In this document: positions 13,510 to 62,400 of the stretch, piece by piece
Position numbering within the stretch: the stretch's first letter is position 1
Layout of the letters: every line of letters begins with the position of its first letter
Origin: Phaeosaccion multiseriatum
Lineage: Eukaryota > Protista > Ochrophyta, other classes
Assembly: GCA_965112735.1 (NCBI GenBank)
Contig: OZ218956.1
Coordinates: 3,100,001-3,164,000 of the forward strand
Direction of reading: 5' to 3'
DNA length: 64,000 nucleotides
Translations under genes and position numbers: made by a program
The notes under the pieces: model-generated
Databases searched by the model: none
Seen by the model: only the letters and a program-made list of their open reading frames with translations
What the model was told of the DNA's origin: nothing

Positions 13510-14407
13510 CTAGGGCACGGGCAGAGGTCGCTTAAGCAGTATCATTGACAACCAACCTGCCATGAAGCAAAGCCCTCCCACGGGCGCCACGCCAGAGACC
13601 TTCTTCTCGCCGGTCAGGATGTAGGTGTAGATGGAGCCCGAGAAGAGGACGATTCCTGAGGTGAAGAAGACGCCAGCCATGGTACGACCGAGGCACGGCT
13701 GCGATAGGTGCGCAACGGCGAGGGCCAGGCTGTGTATTTGGTGGTACTGGGGACGGGTTGGGGGGAGTAGATGGGAAGGCAGAAGAGTTGGCGGAAGAAG
13801 AGAGAGAGAGAGTTGTGACCTTTTCATGCGATTCTACCCCCCCCCCCCCCCTCAGTAAGAGCAAGAGAGAGAGAGAGAGGGGGGGTGAATGAGAGGGAGA
13901 CAGAGAGAAAGAGAGGGGGAGGGAGTGAGAGAGAGAGAGAGGAGGAGAGAGAGTGTGTGTGTGACGTTTTCACGGTATCCTCCCCCCTCTCCCTCTCCGC
14001 GAGAGTCAGAGAGCCCCTGCCGCGTCCCACCATCGCACCTGCACAGCGCTCTTCCAGCTCGCCACCTCCTCAGGCTTCTTACCCTACGGAGCGGGTGTCC
14101 GACGCAGAGTGAGTGGAGGAGAGAGAAGGGAAGATGTTAGTTGTACAAGTTTCTTTTCCCTTCTTGTTTATATCTCTCCACAATACCTTCAACGCGTGGG
14201 CACCCATCGCCCCTGAGGAACACAGCAAAGTAGGGGGAGGGGGGGAAGGGGCGTCTCAGTTGAGTGGCGAGAAGGATTGCTCGGCAACAAAGGCCGAGAG
14301 GGAGGAGGAAGAGGGAGGAAAAGGGAAGGAACAAGGAGGAAAAGAGAAACGCTCTTACCGAGGCCCACAGACGCCGCGCCGCTAACGCCTGCCAATACGT
14401 GCAACAT
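13510..14407 (-). CDS. TMEM256/DUF423 family membrane protein (4 exons)
   Basis: Spliced MLHVLAGVSGAASVGLGAMGAHALK-GKKPEEVASWKSAVQ-YHQIHSLAL...GIVLFSGSIY...APVGGLCFMAGW matches DUF423 motifs. Confidence 0.9.
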
Positions 14408-34250: not shown

Positions 34251-34421
34251 GAACAGGAGGGGCTGGGGCGGCTGAAACTGAAACTAATGCATCACACACT
34301 CTCTGGTCATCAAAAGGGAAGTGGACGTATTCGTCATCCAACCAAACTCACAGCTGGCCGCAATTCCGTTCGTCTACAAGTACATGCAGAGCATTGGTGT
34401 AATAAAAAAAAAAAGAAGACA

Positions 34422-37085
34422 ATGCTAATGATGAGAGCAATGTCGTTGAGGGGGGTGGTCAGAATCTGCTACTCCTCTTGCATTGGCAGGAAAAGAAGAG
34501 GACCCGCTGCTGGACGGCGTCCCCACTCTGACTCTTTACTACATCAGCACAAGCAGCTGCCGCAGCAATGGTCCTGCTACTCCAATGGGGGAAGTGACAA
34601 GTCGAGGCAGATACGGCTCATGAGGGAGATCCAGGATCTGGGGAGGAGCAAGGATTGGAAGAGGGTTGCACCTACTCTGGAGCGCGCACGGCGAGAAGGC
34701 CTCAGGCCTAATCTGTACTGTTTGAGTGCTGCTATTACCGCGATTGGGAAGTGCGGACGGTGGAAGGGCGCTTTGGCTCTCTTGGCAGAGATGAAGAAGG
34801 AAGGCTTCAGGCCAGGCGTGATCAGTTATAACTCCACTATGTACGCATGCGCCAAAGCAAGCAAATACGAGGAGGCATTGCGTTTACTGAGGGAGATGAA
34901 GGCAGAAGGACTTGCTCCCGATGTAATCAGCTACAACGCCACCATTGACGCATGCGCCAGAGCCAGCCAACACGTGGAGGCAATGGGTTTACTGAGGGAG
35001 ATGAAGGCAGAAGGACTCGCTCCCAATGCAATCAGCTATAGCACCACCATTAACGCATGCGCCAGAGCAAGCCAACACGTGGAGGCGATGGGTTTACTGA
35101 GGGAGATGAAGGCAGAAGGACGCGCTCCAGACGTAATCAGCTACAGCGCCACCATTGACGCATGCGCCAGAGCCAGCCAGCACGTGGAGGCAATGGGTTT
35201 ACTGAGGGAGATGAAGGCAGAAGGACTCGCTCCCAACGTAATCAGCTACAGCGCCACCATTAACGCATGCGCCAGAGCAAGCCAACACTTGGAAGCAATG
35301 GGTTTACTGAGGGAGATGAAGAAGGAAGGACTCGCTCCCAATGCAATCAGCTATAGCACCACCATTAACGCATGCGCCAGAGCCAGCCAACACGTAGAGG
35401 CAATGGGTTTACTGAGGGAGATGAAGGCAGAAGGACTTGCTCCCGATGTAATCAGCTACAACGCCACCATTGACGCATGCGCCAGAGCCAGCCAACACGT
35501 GGAGGCAATGGGTTTACTGAGGGAGATGAAGGCAGAAGGACTCGCTCCCGATGTAATCAGCTACAACTCCACCATTAACGCATGCGCCAGATCCAACCAA
35601 CACGTGGAGGCATTGCGTTTACTGAGGGAGATGAAGGCAGAAGGACTCGCTCCGGGTGTAATCAGCTACAGCGGCACCATTCACGCATGCGCCAGAGCCA
35701 ACCAACACGTGGAGGCAATGGATTTACTGAGGGAGATGAAGGCAGAAGGACTCGCTCCAGACATAATCAGCTACAACGCCACCATTAACGCATGCGCCAG
35801 AGCCAACCGACACGCGGAGGCAATAGGTTTACTGAGGGAGATGAAGGCAGAAGGACTCGCTCCAGACGTTATCAGCTACAGCTCCACCATTGACGCATGC
35901 GCCAGTGCCAGCCAACACGTGGAGGCAATGGATTTACTGAGGGAGATGAAGGCAGAAGGAGTCACTCCCAATGCAATCAGCTACAACTCCACCATTGACG
36001 CATGCGCCAGAGCCAGCCGACACGCGGAGGCAATAGGTTTACTGAGGGAGATGAAGGCAGAAGGACTCGCTCCAGACGTTATCAGCTACAGCTCCACCAT
36101 TAACGCATGCGCCAAGGCCAGCCAACACGTGAAGGCAATGAGTTTACTGAGGGAGATGAAGGCAGAAGGACTCGCTCCAGACGTTATCAGCTACAGCTCC
36201 ACCATTAACGCATGCGCCAAGGTCAGCCAACACGTGGAGGCAATGAGTTTACTGAGGGAGATGAAGGCAGAAGGACTCGCTCCAGACGTAATCAGCTACA
36301 GCTCCACCATTGACGCATGCGCCAAGGCCAGCCAACACGTGGAGGCATTGGGTCTACTGAGGGAGATGAAGGCAGAAGGACTCGCTCCCAATGCAATCAG
36401 CTACAGCGCCACCATTAACGCATGCGCCCGAGCCAGCCAACACGTGGAGGCAATGGATTTACTGAGGGAGATGAAGGGAGAAGGACTTGCTCCTAATGCA
36501 ATCAACTACAGCGCCACCATAAACGCATGCGCCAGAGCCAGCCAACACGTGGAGGCAATGGATTTACTGAGGGAGATGAAGGCAGAAGGACTCGCTCCAG
36601 ACGTAATCAGCTACAGCTCCACCATTGACGCATGCGCCAAGGCCAGCCAACACGTGGAGGCATTGGGTTTATTGAGTGAGATGAAGGCAGAAGGACTCGC
36701 TCCCAATGCAATCAGCTACAGCTCCACCATTGACGCTTTGCAGGAGGGTGGCGACGAGGCGGCTGCTGACGAGCTGTACGCAGAGGCCGAATCGCAAGGG
36801 GTCTTGAAGCACTGGAAGAAGGGGGGCCAGGAAGTGGACTTGCACGACTTCACCAGGGGAACGAGCAAGGCAGCGCTTCGTCACGTGCTCTCAGAGGCGA
36901 AGGCGGGGGCTGAGATCAAGGTCATCACAGGCCGAGGCCGAGGCAGTGAGGACGGTGTCAGCGTTCTCAAGGCCGCGGTGCTGGCCTATTTGCAGGAGAG
37001 GCCGGGCGTCGAAGTATGGGAAGACAGACACAACCCGGGGATGGTGGTGATGCGAGTCACCGGTCCGGCAGCAACAGCCCTCTGA
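34422..37085 (+). CDS. P-class PPR-SMR protein, copy A (20 PPR motifs + C-terminal SMR domain), intronless, putative organellar transit peptide
   Basis: Tandem 35-aa motifs VISY(N/S)xTIxACAxASQHVEAMxLLREMKAEGLAP(D/N), with a 105-bp period from 34713 to ~36812. SMR: VDLHDF...IKVITGRGRGS...VLKAAV...NPGMVV. Arg/Ser-rich, acid-poor N-terminus. Confidence 0.95.
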   Translation: MLMMRAMSLRGVVRICYSSCIGRKRRGPAAGRRPHSDSLLHQHKQLPQQWSCYSNGGSDKSRQIRLMREIQDLGRSKDWKRVAPTLERARREGLRPNLYCLSAAITAIGKCGRWKGALALLAEMKKEGFRPGVISYNSTMYACAKASKYEEALRLLREMKAEGLAPDVISYNATIDACARASQHVEAMGLLREMKAEGLAPNAISYSTTINACARASQHVEAMGLLREMKAEGRAPDVISYSATIDACARASQHVEAMGLLREMKAEGLAPNVISYSATINACARASQHLEAMGLLREMKKEGLAPNAISYSTTINACARASQHVEAMGLLREMKAEGLAPDVISYNATIDACARASQHVEAMGLLREMKAEGLAPDVISYNSTINACARSNQHVEALRLLREMKAEGLAPGVISYSGTIHACARANQHVEAMDLLREMKAEGLAPDIISYNATINACARANRHAEAIGLLREMKAEGLAPDVISYSSTIDACASASQHVEAMDLLREMKAEGVTPNAISYNSTIDACARASRHAEAIGLLREMKAEGLAPDVISYSSTINACAKASQHVKAMSLLREMKAEGLAPDVISYSSTINACAKVSQHVEAMSLLREMKAEGLAPDVISYSSTIDACAKASQHVEALGLLREMKAEGLAPNAISYSATINACARASQHVEAMDLLREMKGEGLAPNAINYSATINACARASQHVEAMDLLREMKAEGLAPDVISYSSTIDACAKASQHVEALGLLSEMKAEGLAPNAISYSSTIDALQEGGDEAAADELYAEAESQGVLKHWKKGGQEVDLHDFTRGTSKAALRHVLSEAKAGAEIKVITGRGRGSEDGVSVLKAAVLAYLQERPGVEVWEDRHNPGMVVMRVTGPAATAL

Positions 37086-37699
37086 GCGGAAGGAGAGGCG
37101 TAGATGGATCCGTGGGGCGAAGGCAACGCAAGCGCTCAACAGCAGCAGAGTCCCACGTGTCTCGCCAGGTGTGCGTGACTGTGGCGCTGCTTGGTATGGT
37201 ATAGAGAGAAGAAGGAAGGCCTCCGATTCGCGTGAGCGAGCGGAGACTCGACTGAGTTCGGCACCAAGGTCCCTGGCACTGGGAGCAAGCGGAGGGACGG
37301 GCAAGGCGCAGACAAACTCACTAGGACAGGACAGGAGTCGCGAAGAGCAATACGCAGGAGGAGAGCGAATCGAGGGGAGGGGGGGGGGCTGGAGGCGACG
37401 GGTGACATAGGCAGCGGGGTCAATTTCCCTCTGTCTCTCTTTCTGTGTTTGTGGGGGACCAAGGACGAAGCATCAAATTTCAGCTTAGAATTGGCGTCAT
37501 AAATGAGACCCTTTCGATTGAATGATCGAATATATTAACGTAAACAGGAAGGGAGGGAAGGCGATTACGCGGCTCTTCTTCAGCGCCACCCTTGCTACTA
37601 CTGCGCCCCCACCCTCACAACATCCACAAACGCTTTCCTTCACTTCGACTAGTTATCCTGCCTCGCCTCTTGCTCCCACATCTCCTCTCTCTCGCACGT

Positions 37700-37832
37700 T
37701 ACTCCAGAGAAGGTACCTCTCGCAGGATGCAAACGATGCCCCACCTTTGGCTTCAAAGCTCGGCCGTACTCCAGAGATGTACCTCTCGCAGGATGCAAAC
37801 GATGCCCCCACCTTTGGCTCCAAAGCTCGGCC
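37700..37832. repeat. Two-copy ~66-bp direct repeat
   Basis: TACTCCAGAGA...TACCTCTCGCAGGATGCAAACGATGCCCC..CCTTTGGCT.CAAAGCTCGGCCG occurs twice. Confidence 0.88.
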
Positions 37833-38169
37833 GTCGGCGCGTCGCCGGAGGGGCAGGAGGCTACACCCCCCCCCTTACTCGTGGCTCATTTCTTTCTATA
37901 ACGCCATTCTGAAACGCCATGTTTAACTACATGTACTGTGCATATCAAGGTAGAACCCAGGGAGGCGCTGGACGCCGCCGCTGCTACTCCTACACTGCCT
38001 GCTCCTCCTCCCCCTCCTCCTCCTCCTTCAACTGCTGTATTGCCAACTTGCTGCAGCTGTATCACCAAAGCGCTGCTGCTGTATCACCAACTGCTGCATC
38101 GAACGACACACCACAGGAATCTCCTCCCCTCCCTCCCTCCCTCCCTCCCTGCCACTCCCCCTCCTCCAA

Positions 38170-45300: not shown

Positions 45301-45678
45301 CACCTGTCGGGCTCGAGCAGCGGTAGGACGGTCATGATCGTCAACATCAACCCCTCCTGCGACGACTTTGACGAGACACAGTACGGTGAGTGAGTGAGTG
45401 AGGGAGGGAGAGAGAGAGTGGGTGAGGGACTGAGTGAATGGGTGGCTGAGGGAAGAGTGTGGGTGACTCCAGAGACAGAGGGGAGGCGCATGGGCTCGCA
45501 GAGGGGGGTGCAAGACGACCGAAATAACGAGGAAGAGAGGGAAGATTGTCTGACATGACCACGTCTGACACGCTCAGCCTCCGTCTGTCGCACCCTCCGA
45601 CGATCGCCGTTCAACCCCCGTCTCTCTCTGTCTCTTCCTCCCTCCGATGCACCCTCTCCCCCCTCCCCCTCTTTCTCC

Positions 45679-45709
<31 letters not shown>

Positions 45710-46384
45710 CTCCCTCTACTCACTACTCCTTTCACAGTGCTCTCAAACAGCGCCATTGCACAAGAGGTCAAAACCGTCAAAGACACCGCCGCTACCTCTC
45801 GCTACGCTCAGCTCACCTCCTCCGGCTACGGCAACAACGGACGCAAGATCTCCTCCAAGCTCAATGCATACACCGCCCACCTCAACGCCAAGAGCGGCAA
45901 CAGCAACTCGTACCGCTCCAACCGATCGCCCTTCAAAAAGCAGCAGCCTTCGAGGGGCGGGGCGCTGCTCAACAAGGGCCCCATGCTGGGTACCAGTGGT
46001 CGGCGCCGTAGCAGCGTGCACAAGGGTGGACCTGTCGTAGTTGGGGGAGGAGGAGGAGGAGGAGGAGGAGGAGGAGAGGGTTGGCTGCTGAGTCGTCCCA
46101 GTGTGGGTAAGGCGAGTCGGAGCCGCGTGAGTCTTGGCAAGGCGAGCAGCTCCAGCGCGATGCTCATGCTTCAAGCGCAGCAGAGGGAGAGGCTGAGGAA
46201 GGCACAGGAGCGGCAGGAGAGAGCTTCTCTCGCCATGGAGGAGGACGAGGAGGTGGTGGAGGAAGAGGAGGAAGAGGTGGATGAGTCCACATCACGAGGA
46301 GTAGGAGAGGGCAAGGCGTTTGGGCATGGTGTCAAGGAGGAGGAGTGGAGGAGGGAGTTTGAACATTCTACCGCACAAACCAGC

Positions 46385-46415
<31 letters not shown>

Positions 46416-49400
46416 GCAGCAGCAGCGGGAACAGCAGGCCGGCCTCCGCGAGTGTTGATGGAGGGGGAGAAGCGGACCAGAAGGAGCCGGTGTGGTTCGG
46501 CCTTGAGACGGAGAGATACGCCACTGAGAACGACAAGCTGCGACAAGAAAACGCCGAGCTTCTGCTCCGATTGGAGAGCGTGAAGCTTCAGACCAAGCAG
46601 GAGATGGCAGCAGAAGTGGCGGGGACGGTGGGGGATCTTGTGGCGGCGTTCAGGCTACAGACCATCCGATTGGAGGCCATGAATAAGAACAAGAGCGAGA
46701 AGGCGGAGGAGTGGGCACGCTGGCTCGAGCGGGCCAAGGAGACGGAAGGCTCCACGACTGCTCTGCGGGGAGTAGAGGTGGATACCACAGCGTCTACAAC
46801 CACCACCACCCAGGCCGGGTCTGGGGTGGAAGTGGGCAGGGATTTTGCTAACCTGGTCAAATATACAGCGGCCCTGGAGAGGCTTGTGGAGAGGCAGGGG
46901 CAGGACTGGGCGGAGAGAGAGGCAGCGCACCGGCAGGAACTTGCCGAGTTAGAGGCGGAGTTCGAAGGGTTCCACGAAGAGAATATGCTCGGTCTCCTTG
47001 CGCCGCCGCTTTCGTCTTCGGGGGTGGAGGGAGGAGGAGGAGGAGGAGGAACAGTTGGTGATACAGCGGCACCAGGAGCGAGCATCATTGGGCAGGGGGA
47101 GTGGGTGAGCAAGGAAGAATCCTCTCGTCGCCAAGGCACGCAGCGTAGGCTCAAGCGCCTTGCCAACGACGTTGAGCGCTCGTCTCGGGAGGCGGGCCAG
47201 TGGAAGAGAGAGGCAGCTCAAGCGAGGAGAGATGCTCGCTCGCTAAGGGCCACAGTGGATCAGGCAGAGGCGGATGCAGCTGCTGCCAATGCCAAGGTCG
47301 AGGCTGCTGAGGCTGTCGCTGCTGCTGCTACTGCTAAGGCTGCTGAGGCTCAGGCTGCTGCTGAGGCTGCGGCTGCTGCTGCTGCGGCTGCTGAGGCGGC
47401 TGCTGAGGCATCCTCACCAATGCTGAGCGCTGCTCCTGGGCAGGGCTCGGTCGGAGCAGAATCAGGGAGAGAAGAGGAAGATGGCGAGCAGCACGAGCAG
47501 GAGCACGACCAGGAGGGCAGCCTCCGGGTGCTTCGCTCCTCGTCGCGCGCCTCTTCGCTGGCGTCATCACGAATGAGCGGCGACGAGAATGCCCCACCGG
47601 CACAGCCACAGCCACAGCAGTTGGTCATACAGCCACAGCCACAGGCAAGGCCACTTGCTCCTCCTCCGGTGCATCCCATGACGGCGGGGGGTGCGGGTGG
47701 TAACGGGCAGGCACCGCCGCTGCCACCAAAGGTCTTTAGGCAGAAGCATCAGCAGCTCGATCAGGCAGCGCCGCCACTTCCTCCTCCCCCTCCCCTGGCG
47801 CTGCGGCAGGGGTCCGTGAAGCGACACTTGGGCAGGATGGAGTCACAGGGAGAGATTGTGGAGAAGGCGGGCGGGGGGGGGGTGGCGAGGTTGGGAGGAG
47901 GAGGGGCAGTCGCGGAGGCAAGGGCGGCACTCATGGCTTCGACGACCTTTGGGTCCACCGGGTCGGCGGGCTTTGTGAACAACGGAGGCGGGGTGTTTTA
48001 TAGCAATAATGGTAGCAGCAATGTTAGCGTTATAAGCAGCAACAGTGGGGGAGGGGGAGGGGGGGGTAACAACTACAACTACTCCATGGAGGGGAGCGGC
48101 AGAGGCAGCGGGGGAAGCAGCAGCGCCAACGGCAGCCACGGTAGGCAGCAGCAACAACCCTACGGCCACTACCCCTTGAGCCGCAGCAGCAGCAGCACCA
48201 CCTACTCCTACCACAACCACCCCCCCAGCACGGCGAGACCGTCGGGCAGTTCCGGAAGTGGGGGAGGAGGAGGAGGAGGAGGAGGGGGCGCCTACTACCC
48301 GCAGCGAGGGGTGCTGAACCGGTCCCAGAGCACCAGGTCACAGGGGACGTACCCCGCCGACCGCCGTGCTCAGTTCACCAATGCTACATACGGAAAGTAC
48401 GCCAACACTGGCAATGGCAGGGGGAGCGGGGGAGGGCGTAGTCGTGGCTCGCTGGAGGCAGGACGATCGGTGGTGGCCATCTCTAGACCAGGTAGGAGAA
48501 CAGAGAGAGAGAGAGAGAGAAGGATGTGTGTGTGTAACATGTACAGGAGAGAAAGGGGAGAGGGGAGAGAGAGCCTTTGCATTCAGCCATCTTGTTTGTT
48601 GTTGTCTCACTCTTTGCCTCCCCTCCTGTGTCCTTCTCTTGGTTCTTCTTCTTCTTCTTCTTCTTCTTCTTCTTCTTCTTCTTCTTCGTCTTCTTCTTCT
48701 TCTTCTTCTTCTTCTTCTTCTTCTTCTCTTATCTTCCTCTTCTTCCTCCTCCTCCTCCTCCTCCTGTGCATCATGTTGGAACATTGACAGTGCGCATGAG
48801 TGCCGGAGCAGGAGGGCCACGCTCCCCACGCACCTCTCTCCAGCGCCGATCGGTAGGCAGCCCTGGCCAAAGCAAAGCGGGTTGGCAGAGCCGAAAAACG
48901 GCAAAGGTGAGACTAAAGAGGAGGAGGAGGAGGAGGAGGAGGAGGGCGAGGGGGTGATTGGGGAAAGTGAGCAGGCAAGAAGGACGTGGGTTAGAGTCAG
49001 CGTTGTGTTGTGTGTCGGGAAGGGACGGGGCGTCGGGCAGAGCAAATTTTGCAGTTTTGTTGTTTTGTAGAAAAGGGCCATGATATTTATCTGACGAACA
49101 ATGTCTCCTTCTTCCTCGTGCCCCCTTCCTTCCCTCGTTGAATCGAATTGCTCCCCCCTCCCTGCCTGCCTCCCTCCCTGTCTCTCTCCGTGTGTGTCTC
49201 TCCCACGCACGCACACACGTGCCGTCGTTAGTCCAAGTCGCACGACAACATGCTCGGAAAGCTTGCGAAGGGCCTGCGCAAGATTGTGCATATCGAAGGA
49301 GACCACAAGGATCATCGTAAGTACTTACGTGCTTACAGTAGTGTGTCTACAGTTTCGTATGTATGAAAACTCTGTTGTTCCATCAGAAATAATAATTATC

Positions 49401-50198: not shown

Positions 50199-50948
50199 TT
50201 TGTTGGCGTGTAGTGTGTAGGGGAGGGTAAGAGTGGTGGTCGTGGTGCTGGTGCTGTTTGGGTGGTACTCCCACGGGCAAGGGGGGGGGGGGGGCGAGGG
50301 ACATTAAGCCTTCGACACTCTCCTCCCGTGATGCCCAAGTTGGGCTTTTCACTTAACTCTCTTATAGTTAATGAATGTACATTCTAAAAGTTACACGGTT
50401 AAGGCTGACTATCGGAAGAAGAGGTGTGGGAGGGTGAGCAATCTCGGTAGAGATTCGCGTAGTCGTATACGGCAAGGAAGCGCATTCCGCACGCCACCAG
50501 ATTCAGTTTCAGGTTTCTCAAGCCTGATTGATGCTATCGTACGACTCCATTTATGGCGTTCGATATTTAAACTCGCCGTCAGCCGTGCCTATCTGCCTAG
50601 CCCCTCTCAACTGACCCCGCTGCCTTTGCCACCCGTCGCCTCCAGCCCCCCCCCCTCCCCTCGATTCGCTCTCCTCCTGCGTATTGCTCTTCGCGACTCC
50701 TGTCCTGTCCTAGTGAGTTTGTCTGCGCCTTGCCCGTCCCTCCGCTCGCTCCCAGTGCCAGGGACCTTGGTGCCGAACTCAGTCGAGTCTCCGCTCGCTC
50801 ACGCGAAGCGGAGGCCTTCCTTCTTCTCTCTATACCATACCAAGCAGCGCCACAGTCACGCACACCTGGCGAGACACGTGGGACTCTGCTGCTGTTGAGC
50901 GCTTGCGTTGCCTTCGCCCCACGGATCCATCTACGCCTCTCCTTCCGC

Positions 50949-53198
50949 TCAGAGGGCTGTTGCTGCCGGACCGGTGACTCGCATCACCACCATCCCCGGG
51001 TTGTGTCTGTCTTCCCATACTTCGACGCCCGGCCTCTCCTGCAAATAGGCCAGCACCGCGGGCTTGAGAACGCTGACACCGTCCTCACTGCCTCGGCCTC
51101 GGCCTGTGATGACCTTGATCTCAGCCCCCGCCTTCGCCTCTGAGAGCACGTGACGAAGCGCTGCCTTGCTCGTTCCCCTGGTGAAGTCGTGCAAGTCCAC
51201 CTCCTGGCCCCCCTTCTTCCAGTGCTTCAAGACCCCTTGCGATTCGGCCTCTGCGTACAGCTCGTCAGCAGCCGCCTCGTCGCCACCCTCCTGCAAAGCG
51301 TCAATGGTGGAGCTGTAGCTGATTGCATTGGGAGCGAGTCCTTCTGCCTTCATCTCACTCAATAAACCCAATGCCTCCACGTGTTGGCTGGCCTTGGCGC
51401 ATGCGTCAATGGTGGAGTTGTAGTTGATTACGTCTCGAGCGAGTCCTTCTGCCTTCATCTCCCTCAGTAAATCCATTGCCTCCACGTGTTGGCTGGCTCT
51501 GGCGCATGCGTTTATGGTGGCGCTGTAGTTGATTACATTAGGAGCAAGTCCTTCTCCCTTCATCTCCCTCAGTAAATCCATTGCCTCCACGTGTTGGCTG
51601 GCTCGGGCGCATGCGTTAATGGTGGCGCTGTAGCTGATTACGTCTGGAGCGAGTCCTTCTGCCTTCATCTCCCTCAGTAAACGCAATGCCTCCACGTGTT
51701 GGCTGGCCTTGGCGCATGCGTCAATGGTGGAGCTGTAGTTGATTACGTCTGGAGCGAGTCCTTCTGCCTTCATCTCCCTCAGTAAACTCATTGCCTCCAC
51801 GTGTTGGCTGGCCTTGGCGCATGCGTTAATGGTGGAGCTGTAGCTGATAACGTCTGGAGCGAGTCCTTCTGCCTTCATCTCCCTCAGTAAACTCATTGCC
51901 TCCACGTGTTGGCTGGCCTTGGCGCATGCGTTAATGGTGGAGTTGTAGCTGATAACGTCTGGAGCGAGTCCTTCTGCCTTCATCTCCCTCAGTAAACCTA
52001 TTGCCTCCGCGTGTCGGCTGGCTCTGGCGCATGCGTCAATGGTGGAGTTGTAGCTGATTGCATTGGGAGTGACTCCTTCTGCCTTCATCTCCCTCAGTAA
52101 ATCCATTGCCTCCACGTGTTGGCTGGCACTGGCGCATGCGTCAATGGTGGAGCTGTAGCTGATAACGTCTGGAGCGAGTCCTTCTGCCTTCATCTCCCTC
52201 AGTAAACCTATTGCCTCCGCGTGTCGGTTGGCTCTGGCGCATGCGTTAATGGTGGCGTTGTAGCTGATTATGTCTGGAGCGAGTCCTTCTGCCTTCATCT
52301 CCCTCAGTAAATCCATTGCCTCCACGTGTTGGTTGGCTCTGGCGCATGCGTGAATGGTGCCGCTGTAGCTGATTACACCCGGAGCGAGTCCTTCTGCCTT
52401 CATCTCCCTCAGTAAACGCAATGCCTCCACGTGTTGGTTGGATCTGGCGCATGCGTTAATGGTGGAGTTGTAGCTGATTACATCGGGAGCGAGTCCTTCT
52501 GCCTTCATCTCCCTCAGTAAACCCATTGCCTCCACGTGTTGGCTGGCTCTGGCGCATGCGTCAATGGTGGCGTTGTAGCTGATTACATCGGGAGCGAGTC
52601 CTTCTGCCTTCATCTCCCTCAGTAAACGCAATGCCTCCACGTGTTGGCTTGCTCTGGCGCATGCGTTAATGGTGGCGCTGTAGCTGATTACGTCTGGAGC
52701 GAGTCCTTCTGCCTTCATCTCCCTCAGTAAACGCAATGCCTCCACGTATTGGCTTGCTTTGGCGCATGCGTATATAGTGGAGTTATAGCTGATCACGTCT
52801 GGCCTGAAGCCTTCCTTCTTCATCTCTGCCAAGAGAGCCAAAGCGCCCTTCCACCGCCCGCCATTCCCAATCGCGGTAATCGCAGCATTTAAACAGTACA
52901 GATTAGGCCTGAGGCCTTCTCGCCGTGCGCGCTCCAGAGTAGGTGCAACCCTCTTCCAATCCTTGCTCCTCCCCAGATCCTGGATCTCCCTCATGAGCCG
53001 TATCTGCCTCGACTTGTCACTTCCACCAGTGGAGTAGCAGGACCATTGCTGCGGCAGCTGCTTGTGCTGATGTAGTAAAGAGTCAGAGTCGGCACGCCGT
53101 TCAACACCTCCTCCTACTACTCTTCTATTCCTGCCAATGCAAGAGGAGTAGCAGGTTCTGACCACCCCCCTCAACGACATTGCACTCCTCATTAGCAT
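50949..53198 (-). CDS. P-class PPR-SMR protein, copy B (16 PPR motifs + SMR), inverted paralog of copy A
   Basis: Same architecture as copy A with four fewer 105-bp repeats. The SMR domain differs by one residue (A>P). The ~340-bp 3' flank (50611-50948) also matches 37086-37420. Confidence 0.95.
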   Translation of the reverse strand: MLMRSAMSLRGVVRTCYSSCIGRNRRVVGGGVERRADSDSLLHQHKQLPQQWSCYSTGGSDKSRQIRLMREIQDLGRSKDWKRVAPTLERARREGLRPNLYCLNAAITAIGNGGRWKGALALLAEMKKEGFRPDVISYNSTIYACAKASQYVEALRLLREMKAEGLAPDVISYSATINACARASQHVEALRLLREMKAEGLAPDVISYNATIDACARASQHVEAMGLLREMKAEGLAPDVISYNSTINACARSNQHVEALRLLREMKAEGLAPGVISYSGTIHACARANQHVEAMDLLREMKAEGLAPDIISYNATINACARANRHAEAIGLLREMKAEGLAPDVISYSSTIDACASASQHVEAMDLLREMKAEGVTPNAISYNSTIDACARASRHAEAIGLLREMKAEGLAPDVISYNSTINACAKASQHVEAMSLLREMKAEGLAPDVISYSSTINACAKASQHVEAMSLLREMKAEGLAPDVINYSSTIDACAKASQHVEALRLLREMKAEGLAPDVISYSATINACARASQHVEAMDLLREMKGEGLAPNVINYSATINACARASQHVEAMDLLREMKAEGLARDVINYNSTIDACAKASQHVEALGLLSEMKAEGLAPNAISYSSTIDALQEGGDEAAADELYAEAESQGVLKHWKKGGQEVDLHDFTRGTSKAALRHVLSEAKAGAEIKVITGRGRGSEDGVSVLKPAVLAYLQERPGVEVWEDRHNPGMVVMRVTGPAATAL

Positions 53199-53473
53199 TG
53201 TATCTTCTGCTCCCCTTACCCCCAATAGAGGCTATACACTTTCCTCCCTTCTATCCGTAACCAACTGCTGAGGCTGCACACGTTGCCAAATTGACCATAG
53301 GCTTGCCGATCTCCTCGCGAAACGTATCGCTGATATGGCATAGCTTTTCTCTGCCCCACACACACTTTGCGGCCACCTGTGAGTTTGGTTAGAGGACCAA
53401 TACGTCCAGCCACTTTCCCGACCACTGGGAGCGGATCGTGCACGTCTATTGCAGTTAAAGAAATGTTATGAAG

Positions 53474-56400
53474 TTAGGGCATGATTCCATTGGAAAGCCA
53501 CTGGAAGCTGTCGTACTGGGCGGTGGTGTAACTGTTCATGCTCTCACGAATGAGGTCCAGGCAACGGGCGACGGTACGTGTCTTGTCTAGGCTTGGGACC
53601 AGGCGCTATGTGGTGAAAGGGTAGAGCACAGGGGGAGGGGGGGAGGAGAACAAACACCATGAGCACGCCCATGCAGAGGGAGGGGGGGGGGGGGGGGAGG
53701 AGGAGAAGGGAGATTGAGGGGCGGGGGGGAATGGGGAGGGAAGGACAAGAGATTAGATTAGGCATAAGGGGGGGGGAGGGGAGGGGAGGGGGCGAAGGGA
53801 AGGAAAGAGGGACATATCCTTACTAGCTGGAAGGGGCGAGGGAGAGTCAAGTAAGTGGATGGAGTGGATGGAGTGGGTGGAGTGGATGGAGTGGATGGAG
53901 TGGATGGAGTGGGTGGAGTGGGTGGAGTGAATGGAGTGGATGGAGTGGGTGGAGTGGATGGAGCGGTGGAGTGGGTGGAGTGGATGGAGTGGATGGAGGG
54001 GGTGGATGGCTGAGAGAGGGTGGAGTGGATGGAGTGGATGGAGTGGATGGAGTGGATGGAGCGGATGGAGTGGGTGGATGGGTGAGAGAGGGAGGGACAC
54101 ACAAACGTCAACACAGCACCTTATCCAGACCCCTGGGGACGGATAGCCCATGTACTGGTCGTCGTCGGAGCGGTTCTGTAACGTCTACTTATCGTACGAT
54201 AAAAAGTGAAACTGAAACGAGCACAGGACACCGAAGACGAGTGCGACAGAGACACCGTCATACCACCCCTCCCACCTGCTTAAGCTTGTTGAGAATGGCG
54301 TTGCTGTCCTTGCCCGCAAAGCACTTGAGAGGGGACTTGAATGTAAGCATCTTCACGAGGGTGAGGATGCGGTCAGAGTGCGATTGGAGAGCGAGGAAGC
54401 CGCAGGTGAAGGCCACCACGAAGTCCATAAAGGTCTGCAGATGGAATGGCAGCAGATGCATGGGGATGGATGGCAGCAGATGCATGTGGATAGATGGCAG
54501 CAGATACATGGGGATGGATGGCAGCAGATGCATGGGGATGGATGGCAGCAGATACATGGGGATGATGGCAGCAGATGCATGGGGATGGATGGCAGCAGAT
54601 GCATGGGGATGGATGGCAGCAGATGCATGGGGATGGATGGCAGCAGATGCATGGGGATGGATGGCAGCAGATACATGGGGATGGATGGCAGAAGATGCAC
54701 GGGGATGGATGGCAGCAGATGCATGGGGATGGATGGCAGCAGATACATGGGGATGGATGGCAGCAGATGCATGGGGATGGATGGCAGCAGATACATGGGG
54801 ATGGATGGCAGCAGATGCATGGGGATGGATGGCAGAAGAAGGCGACTGTGATTGGTAATCGTTTGATGGAGAGTGAAAGTGAATTAGTGAGTGAGGGGGT
54901 GAGTGAGTGGGTGAGTGAGTGAGTGGGTGAGTGAGTATGAGAGAGAGAGAGACCAATGCACATGCCCCAAGTAGTACACTCACTCCCCACCCACCCAAGT
55001 GCCCTCACTTCCCACCCACCTGCGACTCCACGCCCCCCATCACCTGAACCATCTCTGGCGTGAGTTTGAAAGGGCTCGTCTCCAGGCTGAAGGTGCCCCC
55101 CGGGGCCGTGCCCAGGATGAAACCGAAGTCAATGTGCACCAAGTGGCCGTCCTTGGGGGATGAGAGAGTGGAGGGGTGAGGTGGGTGAGTGGGTGGGTTG
55201 GTGGGATAGTTGGTGGTGAGTGGGCGGGTGAGTGAGTGAGTGAGTAAGCTAATGAAGGGGTGGGTGGGTGGGTGTTCAGTGGGAGAGTGAGTCAAGGAGA
55301 AGAAGAAGGAGGAGGAGGAGGAGGAGGAGGAGGAGGAGGAGGAGGAGGAGGAGGAGGAGGAAGAGGAGGAAGAGGAGGAGGAGGAGGAGGAAGAGGAGGA
55401 GGAGGAGGAGGAGGAGGAGGAGGAGGAGGAGGAGGAGGAGGAGAAGAGAGAAGAGGACTGTAGCACAATGCCTGGACTGGAACCGAACACTCACCGCAGA
55501 GAGCAGCACGTTTCCGTTGTGCCTTGTAAGTCAATGAGTGAGGCGAGTGATGTGAGAGGGTTTGGGGGGGATGGGAGGGGTGGGAGGGGTGGGAGGGGAG
55601 GGCGGTGAGGGAGATGAAGGGAGGGAGGCGAGGGGCGGGAGCGGAGGGAGGGAGGTCAACGATGAGGTGAGGGGAGGGACAGCAGCGGAGGGGGCGGAGG
55701 TGAGGGAGGGGATGGGGGGAGGGGAGGGGAGGGGAGGGGAGGGGAGGGGAGGGGAGGGGAGGGGAGGGGAGGGGAGGGGAGGGGAGAGGAGGGACAGAGG
55801 GAGGGAGGGAGGGAGGGAGGGAGGGAGGGAGGGAGGGAGGGAGGGAGGGAGGGAGGGAGGGAGGGAGGGAGGGAGGGAGGGAGGGAGGGATGGAGGGAGG
55901 GATGGAGTGAGGGAGAAAGAGCTTCACACCTGTCCTTGATCTGGAACACGTAGCAGGCGAGACTGTAAGCAGCGGTGGACGACACGAAGGCCCTCTGAGC
56001 GTCTTTGAAGGGCTGACCACTGGGGCTGGGCACGGCACAGCGTGGCAAGGCAAGGCAAGGGGTTAGGAAGGGGAGGGGTGAGCAGACGTTACACAACCGT
56101 TACAGAGAGAAGTTCTTTTTTCTCCTCTTCCTCTGTCGCCTCCCCTCCTCCCCTTCCTCTACCCAATGCTGCTGCCTCTACTGGTGCAGTGCTTCTCCTC
56201 CACCTACCCTCCCTCCCCCCTCCCCCCATCCCCCCTTCCCTCCCCCTCACCTGCCGTATATATTCTCAAAATGCTTCTTGAGTCCCGGGAAGTTAGGCTT
56301 CTTCTTGATGCTGTCGAGCGAAGCCATGTTGGTCAGCGTCTGCAGCAGGCCTGTAGTTAAGTCAATAAGTGTAAGTCAACGAATGTATCCTGGTTAGCCG

Positions 56401-59400: not shown

Positions 59401-62400
59401 GAGAAAGACAGATAGAAAAAGTGGGAGAGAGAGGGAGGGAGAAAGATCAAGAGGGGAAAGCGAGAGGGAAAGGGAAAAGAGAGGAAAACGTAGGGGAAAG
59501 AGAGGCAGCATAAATAAAAGACAACCCCAATAAAGCAAGCAAGTAGTGAAGCAATCAAACAATCAGTTACTCACTCCCCATCCTTCTCCCTCTCCCCCCC
59601 CCCCCCACCCCTGCCCCCCTCCTCCCGTCCCTCTTTTGTTCCCTCACCTTTGACTCTTCCGATTCGAGGCTCCGAGGGCCGTTCCCCGGCGCACTGGTGA
59701 CGTCACAGCTGGCGGTAGGAGGATTGGTTGTTCGCCGTCCTCCCCCCCCGGCACCCACTGCAGCCCCTCCCCTCTTCCGTCGCCAAGTGGAGGCGTTACG
59801 TAGCCTGGGCCGCCGCCGTCGGAGTCGGAGGCTTCCCTTGTTTCCCCTCCTTTCCCCCCCGTGGATGATGATTCCACTCTTTCTCTCTCCTTCTCCTCCT
59901 TGACCCCGCTGCTGCTGCTGCTGCTGCTGTGACCACTATCTACTAGTGATGTTGTCGCGTCATCATCATCATCCTCCTCCTCCTCCTCCTTCTCCTCCCC
60001 ACCCCCATTCCCATCCTCGCTGCCGAGCTGGAGCTCTTGCATCTTCAAGGTCGCCACCTCTTCCTCCCCTCCTACTTGCTCTTCCCCCCCACCCCCCCCA
60101 CCACCACCACCACTGCTGCTCTCTCTCCCTCTCCTTCTGCGGCGCTGGGTCCTCACACCACCATCCTGATCCCCTTCTCCCTTTAGCTGCCCTTCCTCTT
60201 CCTCGTCGCTCTCCCCCACCTTGCCCTTGTCATCTCCTCCTTCCCCTTCCATTCGTCCCTCCTTCCCTGCTGTGGTGGCCGTGGTGGTGTTGGTACTCCG
60301 ACCACCTCCACTGCTCGAATTCACAGCTGGCCCATCTGAGAGGCAGCGCTGTAGACCCTGCACGTTGATTATGCTCGTCACCTCATCCAAATTGGCATAA
60401 AATGGTTCGCTCACACCCCTCTCTCCTAACGCTGGCACCAGCTGAGGCGGAACAAGAGGCACGGCAACACTCACCTCTTCCTCCTCCCCCTCCCCAATAG
60501 CCCCCTGACCGCTATGTTGCCTCTTTCTATTGCCCCTCCCGAGCGACGCCGACGAAGACAACGCCTTCGACAAGAGCCGCTGAGAAGCAGCGGCAGCAGC
60601 ACTACTCGCACTCCTCCCCCCCCCACCACCATCATCACCACTACCTCCCCCGCCCTCCCCCGCTGCCCGACCTTCCGTGGTCTCACCGTTCCCAGCCCCA
60701 GCCCCTTCCGGGGCACCGCCACCGCCGCCGGATGAAGAAGCAGAAGAGCTATTACTACCGCTGTTGCTGGTGCTGTTGCTGTTGCTGCTTCGACCCTGAC
60801 CCTGACACAAGGGAGCAAGTACCTCACACACAATGAGGGTTGGAGCCCTCTCCTTGGTCTTGAAGACATGCCCTTCGTCCACGGGGATGCGAGCAATGGG
60901 GCGAATGGGGTCAGACCCCTGGCACACAGGCAGGTAGCCGGGCGTTCGCTGGTATGGTGGCCCTCTTCCTCCTCCTCGTCCTCCTCCTCCTCCTGCTCCT
61001 CGTCCTCTTCCTGCTCGTCCTGCTCCGGAGGAGGATTCGAGCCCTCCGTCACCACCGCTGTTCTTGTTCTTGTTGCTGTTCTTGTTGCTGTTGTTGTTGC
61101 CACGCGGGCGGGACAGGGTAGGCGGGGGGCGGACAGGCGAGTGCGGAGGAGATGGGGGGTGGCCAGAGGAGGAAGACAGAGACCAGGCCGGCGATACTCG
61201 AGACGGTGGAGAGAGTGGACGCTGGTGGTGGTGATGATGATGCTGATGTTGATCATCATCATGCTGATCATCACTGTGAACATGGTGCTCCAACAGGGCT
61301 TCCACAGAGCCCGAGCCCTGGCTGTGCGATGCTTGTCGTTGGCTCCCGTGACCATGTCGATGCGGAGAGGCAGACGACGATTGAAGGTATTTCTCCTGCT
61401 CGTGCCCCTGCCGCTCCTGTGCAGTGGTAGTGGTAGTAGCACTAGTGTCACGGGTTGTACAAGACGAAGAGGAGGAGCAAGAGGAGGAGGAGGAGGAGGA
61501 GGAGGAGGAGGAGGATGGCAACCCCTCGAGCTCCTCTAACTTGGTCTGGAGCACTCGGGATCGATGCTCCACCGGGTACACGAAGCGAAGGGCCTCTGCA
61601 ATGTCCGTGAGACATGCCACGAACGCAAGCTGCTCCTCAAAGTACCTGGGACGAAGATGAGATGGCAGTGGATGGGTGGATGTAAGAGGATGGCAGTGGA
61701 TGGGTGGATAGAAGAGGATGGCAGTGGATGGGTGGATGTAAGAGGATGGCAGTGGATGGGTGGATAGAAGAGGATGGCAGTGGATGGGTGGATGTATATA
61801 AGAGGATGGCAGTGGATGGGTGGACATAAGAGGAAGGGCAGTGGATGGGTGGACATAAGAGGAAGGGCAGTGGATGGGTGGAAAGAAGAGGATGGCAGTG
61901 GATGGGTGGATAGAAGAGGATGGCAGTGGATGGGTGGATAGAAGAGGATGGCAGTGTGTGACATAAGAGGAAGGGCAGTGGATGGGTGGATATAAGAGAA
62001 TGGCAGTGGATGGGTGGACATAAGAGGATGGCAGTGGATGGGGAGTGAATGAGGAAGGCAAGCTTCTCCTCGAAGTACCTATGGTATGGTAAGTGAGTGA
62101 GTGAAGGAGGGAGTCAGGATGGCAGTGGATGGATATAGGTAGGGTGCAAATGGATGATGGGCAAGGAATGAGGAAAGAGGACAAGCAAGGTGCTCCTCGC
62201 CTCACACAAGTACCCACCCACCCTACCCTACCCCTGCGGTACCACACCACACCTGGTGGACTGTAGCCTCTGCATGTACTCCTCCTCCTCCTCCTCCTCG
62301 CTCCCATCCGCACTGCCCCCCCTCATCAACAACATGTCCATCAGGGGCGGGTCCATAACCGTGGGCATGTTGAGCTTGACCTGAAAGCCCAAAAAGAACT

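Follow-up and report, generated by a model that had tools for sequence, protein, structure and literature searches.

Restorer-of-fertility-like (RFL) pentatricopeptide repeat (PPR) proteins diversify by insertion and deletion of whole motifs and by chimeric genes that arise through gene conversion, and their variability is highest at positions 5 and 35 of the repeat (PMC5075784). Another group, the PPR-SMR proteins, has already been reported in heterokonts (PMC3858433). PPR-SMR proteins and RFL-type diversification of the PPR code residues are each known. Their combination in an alga, with repeats as uniform as those of laboratory consensus PPRs, seems to be undescribed, and searches of full-text papers turned up no account of it. 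The gene considered here, copy B, is found in Phaeosaccion multiseriatum in a window of 64,000 nt (positions 3,100,001 to 3,164,000, forward strand, of contig OZ218956.1, assembly GCA_965112735.1), which is the whole stretch of DNA analysed. It occupies positions 50949..53198 on the minus strand, and its closest paralogue, copy A, lies in the same window at 34422..37085 on the plus strand. With a probability of roughly 60%, the two genes belong to a recombining, RFL-like PPR-SMR family in which A and B are a recent inverted pair that is diversifying its predicted RNA specificity.

Several features of the algal family are shared with the RFL genes of angiosperms. Both have P-class arrays of 15-20 motifs, clustered paralogues with fast turnover, an excess of change at residues 5 and 35, whole-motif indels, and chimeric genes. 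In contrast, RFLs carry no SMR domain, form a land-plant clade and have much less uniform repeats. The selective agent acting on RFLs, the transcripts of cytoplasmic male sterility (CMS), is known, whereas the targets of the algal family are code predictions only. The RFL parallel drawn in an earlier note on this DNA is apt as an analogy, with regard to the whole-motif indels and the variation at positions 5 and 35. Membership in the RFL clade fails because an Smr tail is present and close relatives outside this genome are absent. The nearest outside proteins reach at most 48% identity and are no plant RFLs; those that bear a name are from a brown alga and dinoflagellates.

The plant PPR-SMR proteins (GUN1, SOT1, SVR7, pTAC2 and the ATP4/PPR53 group) resemble the algal genes in their P-class tract, their C-terminal Smr domain of subfamily 2 and the positions of the LDXH and TGXG motifs. 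They are, however, few (8 in Arabidopsis), old and conserved as single copies with degenerate repeats, whereas the algal family comprises tens of copies with ~90% identical repeats and a variable repeat number. A near-invariant scaffold whose repeats differ mainly at two specificity residues is also characteristic of synthetic consensus ("designer") PPRs and of transcription activator-like effector (TALE) arrays. Designer PPRs are engineered and TALEs are bacterial DNA-binding effectors; the likeness is one of analogy, with no homology to TALEs. If binding follows the code, the family would amount to a natural collection of PPR scaffolds of the designer kind, each with a nuclease-type tail, and would be useful for engineering RNA-targeting tools. 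It would also offer a second, independent case for what drives the rapid re-aiming of organellar RNA-binding proteins. As the youngest split found in the family, A and B are the best place to test a shift of target by a few code changes and a four-repeat indel.

Copy B and the PPR-SMR family

Copy B appears to be a functional-looking nuclear gene of a large, lineage-specific, intronless P-class PPR-SMR family. The coding sequence, including the stop codon, is an intact single open reading frame (ORF) in one exon and encodes 749 aa. The surrounding ORF extends over 50949-53225 (minus strand), with the first ATG at 53198. The N-terminus of 64 aa (53007..53198, minus strand) is rich in Arg and Ser, has no acidic residue in its first 31 aa and lacks a long, signal-peptide-like hydrophobic core. 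From this composition we infer a resemblance to a mitochondrial presequence. The PPR array (51222..53006, minus strand) consists of 17 units of exactly 105 nt each. Unit 1 is degenerate, units 2-16 are canonical, and unit 17 is a half-degenerate cap. The repeat period of exactly 35 aa places the protein in the P class of PPRs, and Pfam recognises PF13041 (PPR_2) with 476 bits in 15 stretches and PF01535 with 339 bits.

The Smr domain (51006..51200, minus strand; residues 667-731 of 749) is of the subfamily 2 type and scores 26.9 bits with PF01713, against a cut-off of 25.7. Its C-terminal position after the PPR tract assigns copy B to the PPR-SMR subgroup, and it can be aligned to the Smr domain of human N4BP2. 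The subfamily-2 motifs LDXH and TGXG, as defined for Smr domains with shown nuclease activity (PMC3858433), read VDLH, in which V stands for L but D and H are retained, and TGRG in both copies.

Copy A encodes 887 aa, with 21 units and an Smr domain, within an ORF at 34287-37085 (plus strand); the ATG common to both copies is at 34422. The repeat numbering used here sets Y at position 4 and the last residue at position 35, so that the base-specifying residues are those at positions 5 and 35. Position 5 holds N, S or T, and position 35 holds D, N or G. The earlier note left the degenerate unit 1 uncounted, and its motif 1 is unit 2 here; on that count, its 16 motifs in B and 20 in A were obtained again. 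The family as a whole occupies at least 60 loci in the 67-Mb genome. Its genes are intronless and P-class, with near-identical 35-aa repeats (~90% identical) that number from 8 to 21 per gene. The combinations ND, SD, SN and NN are used in balanced numbers and cover all four bases.

Change at the base-specifying residues

Over the 13 collinear motifs, A and B differ by 11 aa, three of them at positions 5 or 35 (S>N, N>D and S>N), exactly as first counted. In copy B, these are codon 5 of unit 11 (51942..51944, minus strand; N, with S in A15), which is an isolated single G/A change, codon 35 of unit 13 (51642..51644, minus strand; D, with N in A17), and codon 5 of unit 16 (51417..51419, minus strand; N, with S in A20). 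Unit 2 differs at both code positions, S and G in A against N and D in B, which also agrees with the earlier note. Codon 5 of that unit (52887..52889, minus strand) is N in B and S in A; of the family genes, 12 carry N and 11 carry S at this place. Codon 35 (52797..52799, minus strand) is D in B and G in A, G being the derived state, with D or N elsewhere in the family. The SMR tail differs by one residue, Ala in A and Pro in B. The code string predicted for copy B was reproduced as originally written.

Under a uniform null, three of 11 differences at positions 5 and 35 correspond to P=0.022, and five of 18, with units 2 and 3 added, to P=0.003. When code and non-code codons were compared by Fisher's test, the same two sets gave P=0.02 and 0.002. 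These counts overstate independence because the N35D change of unit 13 sits in a conversion tract from another repeat, and because the two S3N changes occurred in parallel in two sister units. The tract comprises six nucleotide changes, two of them silent, which fall in codons 22-23 and 34-35 and in codon 1 of the unit that follows.

The title claim of the earlier note, that B is the reprogrammed copy, is not supported. Polarity was judged with the nearest other repeat units as outgroup and is ambiguous at the code sites; by this measure derived changes are split about evenly, with 7 nonsynonymous and 4 synonymous in A and 6 and 2 in B. Copy A carries derived changes of its own, among them the G35 of unit 2 and a P>A replacement in the SMR tail, at a conserved proline common to human N4BP2. 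Each copy has thus moved away from the other, and B is not the one reprogrammed copy.

The wider sample comprised 396 repeat units from 29 family genes, and the units were joined in a minimum spanning tree from which A and B were excluded (27 genes). Among the 80 closest unit pairs (at most 3 nt apart), the first position of codon 35 had 17 changes and ranked top of the 105 sites, followed by the second position of codon 5 (15 changes) and the second position of codon 1 (10 changes). Relative to the synonymous third-position rate, transitions were 12.9 times more frequent at codon 35 (P=8e-14) and 7.6 times more frequent at codon 5 (P=1e-6). Per unit of standing polymorphism, the code sites changed 3.5-4.7 times more than equally polymorphic third positions. 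Isolated single changes made up 26 of the 35 toggles at codon 5. CpG hypermutation at codon 35 was considered and rejected, the preceding base being G or C at background proportions. Counted on a minimum spanning tree of repeat units, the per-codon ratio to the global synonymous rate was 2.5 for codon 5 and 3.0 for codon 35; recombination among repeats violates the assumptions of a formal codon site model.

When all 396 units were taken, A and B included, positions 5 and 35 accounted for 28% of the nonsynonymous changes in the closest pairs (40/142), in agreement with the 27-28% found between A and B. The enrichment first noticed in the pair recurs in the 27 other family genes and, to a lesser degree, among three further paralogue pairs. 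It is real and characterises the family as a whole. It allows two readings: specificity may have changed repeatedly under selection, or the scaffold may be homogenised while selection holds the code residues. Both readings involve selection on the code, but only the former fits an arms race.

A second very recent paralogue pair was seen in the family. L002 and L006 (G000 C3:3516120-3518357 and 3508523-3510655) stand in tandem, ~8 kb apart, and are identical in 9 of 14 units; they differ by only 4 aa, one of which is N35D.

Mosaic divergence of the inverted pair

A and B are supported as real, separate, recent inverted paralogues. They lie in opposite orientation with 13.2 kb between them, amid nuclear genes of ordinary kind (SH3, protein kinase). 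Over their full length they are mutual best matches, with 94-100% DNA identity compared to at most 90% with any other locus. The similarity extends over A 34417-37422 and B 53203-50612, from ~5 nt before the ATG to 337 nt past the stop codon. It ends sharply on both sides, beyond which the DNA is unrelated. The common 3' flank lies at 50612..50948 (minus strand) in B, where it marks the end of the duplicated segment, and, by sequence comparison, at 37086..37422 (plus strand) in A, with 4-5 mismatches between the two. Retroposition as the origin of the pair was rejected, the 3' border of the duplicated segment bearing no poly(A) trace. Just past the end of the shared segment in A, a direct tandem repeat of 67-69 nt (94% identical) was observed at 37700-37834 (plus strand).

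Divergence between the copies is mosaic: at synonymous sites it amounts to 0.079 for the 5' block, which reaches from the presequence to unit 3, and to 0.011 for the 3' block. Within the 5' block, the presequences differ by a cluster of substitutions and a 2-codon indel, unit 1 is identical, and units 2 and 3 each differ at 7 of 105 nt. A third-party donor for the diverged 5' units of B was sought by BLAST against the 28 other loci and by a whole-genome DNA search, and was rejected; A is 94% identical, other loci at most 89%. Downstream, units 5-10 of B (51957..52586, minus strand) equal units 9-14 of A. The identity had been noticed at the amino acid level and extends to the DNA, with 0 differences in 630 nt. 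The mismatch-free run reaches 643 nt, with another 9 nt on the 5' side. With 1.5% divergence in the 3' flank and elsewhere in the 3' block, a mismatch-free run of this length has P=6e-5; it marks a recent A-B conversion tract. Gene conversion is expected between inverted repeats this close. Together, the mosaic divergence and the mismatch-free stretch indicate that gene conversion between A and B is ongoing.

The length difference between the copies amounts to exactly four repeat units (420 nt), in register. Units 4-8 of A (34923..35447, plus strand), five in number, correspond to the single unit 4 of B (52587..52691, minus strand), and this indel falls at the border between the older-diverged part and the recently homogenised part. 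Unit 4 of B has no near-identical partner in A, differing from each of A4 to A8 at 5-9 nt, and a single clean unequal crossover is not supported. The simplest reading of the history of the pair would be an older duplication, repeated gene conversion between A and B, and a change of repeat number at the edge of the homogenised part.

Competing explanations and the upstream element

In the preferred reading, that of a recombining family with a recently duplicated pair, A and B would still exchange sequence by gene conversion, and recombination slipping by whole repeats would alter the number of repeats. Single-nucleotide toggles (AGC/AAC at codon 5, GAY/AAY at codon 35), together with short conversion tracts, would alter the base-specifying residues fastest, and paralogues would thereby end with different predicted RNA specificities. 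The proteins would follow the PPR code in binding RNA of organelles, probably of mitochondria, and the SMR tail may cut or recruit. Selection would act on the specificity itself, rather than the code sites being merely free of constraint.

Several observations weigh against this reading. Conversion that homogenises the scaffold, together with selection that preserves old code differences, would give the same site pattern. A smaller excess is seen in the three further recent paralogue pairs, where positions 5 and 35 take 5 of 31 differences (P=0.03), and two of these pairs contain a pseudogene. The ratio of nonsynonymous to synonymous divergence (dN/dS) between A and B is close to 1 and fits neutrality as well as mixed selection regimes. 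It is 0.86 in the 3' block (95% bootstrap 0.32-3.6), 1.03 in the repeats of that block and 0.63 in the 5' block, and is distinguishable neither from 1 nor from the family mean of ~0.5. Positive selection on the pair is not supported by these comparisons. The short-read unitigs fail to span the arrays, so the repeat number rests on the assembly. The target predicted for B was not found in the organellar contigs either. In a whole-genome pattern search, which included the mitochondrial contig (C17) and the plastid contigs (C18-C22) of the assembly, the predicted target of B had no organellar match at up to 1 mismatch and that of A none at up to 2 mismatches, and genome-wide matches to both were no more numerous than those to a reversed-pattern control. 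Finally, none of the recorded RNA runs contains the gene.

Neutral decay of a redundant duplicate is a possible but somewhat unlikely alternative. After the duplication, constraint would be relaxed on one copy or on both. Their differences, also at positions 5 and 35, would reflect drift and random conversion from neighbouring repeats, and selection for a new target would play no part. The dN/dS of about 1 in the repeat block and the lack of the gene in RNA runs suit this explanation, as does the upstream DNA, which A and B do not share save for an element of 42 nt. Part of the change, moreover, consists of conversion tracts that move existing variants, and the family has pseudogenes. Nonetheless, in the 3' block 3 of 26 code nucleotides have changed, compared to 0.29 expected at the silent rate (P=0.003), and neutral conversion would not separate the code sites from silent sites of equal polymorphism, over which they stand 3.5-4.7 times. 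Both copies also keep an intact ORF, intact SMR motifs and an intact upstream motif. As for the pseudogenes, L008 (G000 C12:877836-880046) and L028 (G000 C4:791748-793223) have internal stop codons, and their closest intact partners are L017 and L022.

Another proposal goes further than the preferred reading and is doubtful. The family would consist of natural, self-diversifying, programmable RNA endonucleases, built from a uniform PPR scaffold, a four-letter code and a putative SMR nuclease, with specificities renewed time and again, through recombination that slips by repeats and through selected toggles at the two code residues, in conflict with selfish organellar or parasitic RNAs of a stramenopile-type alga. 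The situation would then match, in an alga, the conflict between RFLs and CMS transcripts, and A and B would be a pair that has only just split.

An arms race in the strict sense, with recurrent positive selection to keep pace with changing organellar RNAs, selfish or chimeric, or with an RNA parasite, in the way RFLs follow CMS transcripts, is quite improbable. B would then be a newly aimed putative nuclease. Such a course would agree with the code sites evolving fastest, with the flux in repeat number, the clustering of family genes and the turnover into pseudogenes, with the conserved catalytic-type SMR motifs, and with the same pattern in RFL genes (PMC5075784). However, no target was found in the organellar contigs, and the dN/dS of the pair is not above 1. 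A large protein search revealed no orthologue in another strain or species, the best outside match having 48% identity over about half of the query.

An assembly artefact is hardly credible. A and B would then be wrongly assembled haplotypes of one locus, or a single repeat locus that was collapsed or badly polished, and their differences would be polishing swaps between near-identical repeats. Near-identical 105-nt repeats are hard to assemble and polish, and short-read unitigs do not span the arrays. However, the copies stand on one contig with unrelated flanks and ordinary genes around them, and polishing swaps should affect code sites and silent polymorphic sites alike, contrary to what is observed. 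Unitigs from the runs of two studies bridge the 3' junction of copy B (50209-50646 and 50281-50655), and those from one sample's runs bridge the 5' junction (53166-53883 and 53154-53331). At codon 1 of unit 15, unitigs with the B state and unitigs with the A state are both present. The bridged junctions and the two states at this differing site rule out the mix-up of haplotypes that the earlier note had named as a reason to withdraw its claim. An apparent joint in one run, skipping 50300-53678, was discarded as noise; its shorter side measures 20 nt and lies in G-rich, low-complexity DNA.

The 42-nt element that forms the only alignable part of the upstream DNA of A and B has the core CCAAACTCACAG. 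Before copy B it lies at 53367..53408 (minus strand), ~190 nt ahead of the ATG, and before copy A at 34322-34363 (plus strand). The 12-nt core is found before 11 of 23 family genes, L007, L023, L010 and L021 among them, at ~40-190 nt from the ATG, and the reversed control gave 0 hits. The element may serve the family as a promoter, transcription-start or 5' untranslated region element. Its retention in both copies argues mildly against B as a dead copy without a promoter.

Some further observations concern the organellar contigs and the rest of the window. The mitochondrial contig C17 holds four identical cox1 genes (at 13877, 69823, 122739 on the minus strand and 181672), ~53-59 kb apart and one of them inverted, and resembles a concatemer-type assembly of the mitochondrial genome. 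Contigs C18-C22 bear psbA-type genes and resemble redundant plastid pieces. Outside the present finding, the window contains two long ORFs, at 45647-48787 (plus strand) and 59644-62313 (minus strand), which are nearly all low-complexity (poly-G, poly-S, poly-N, poly-A and poly-E).

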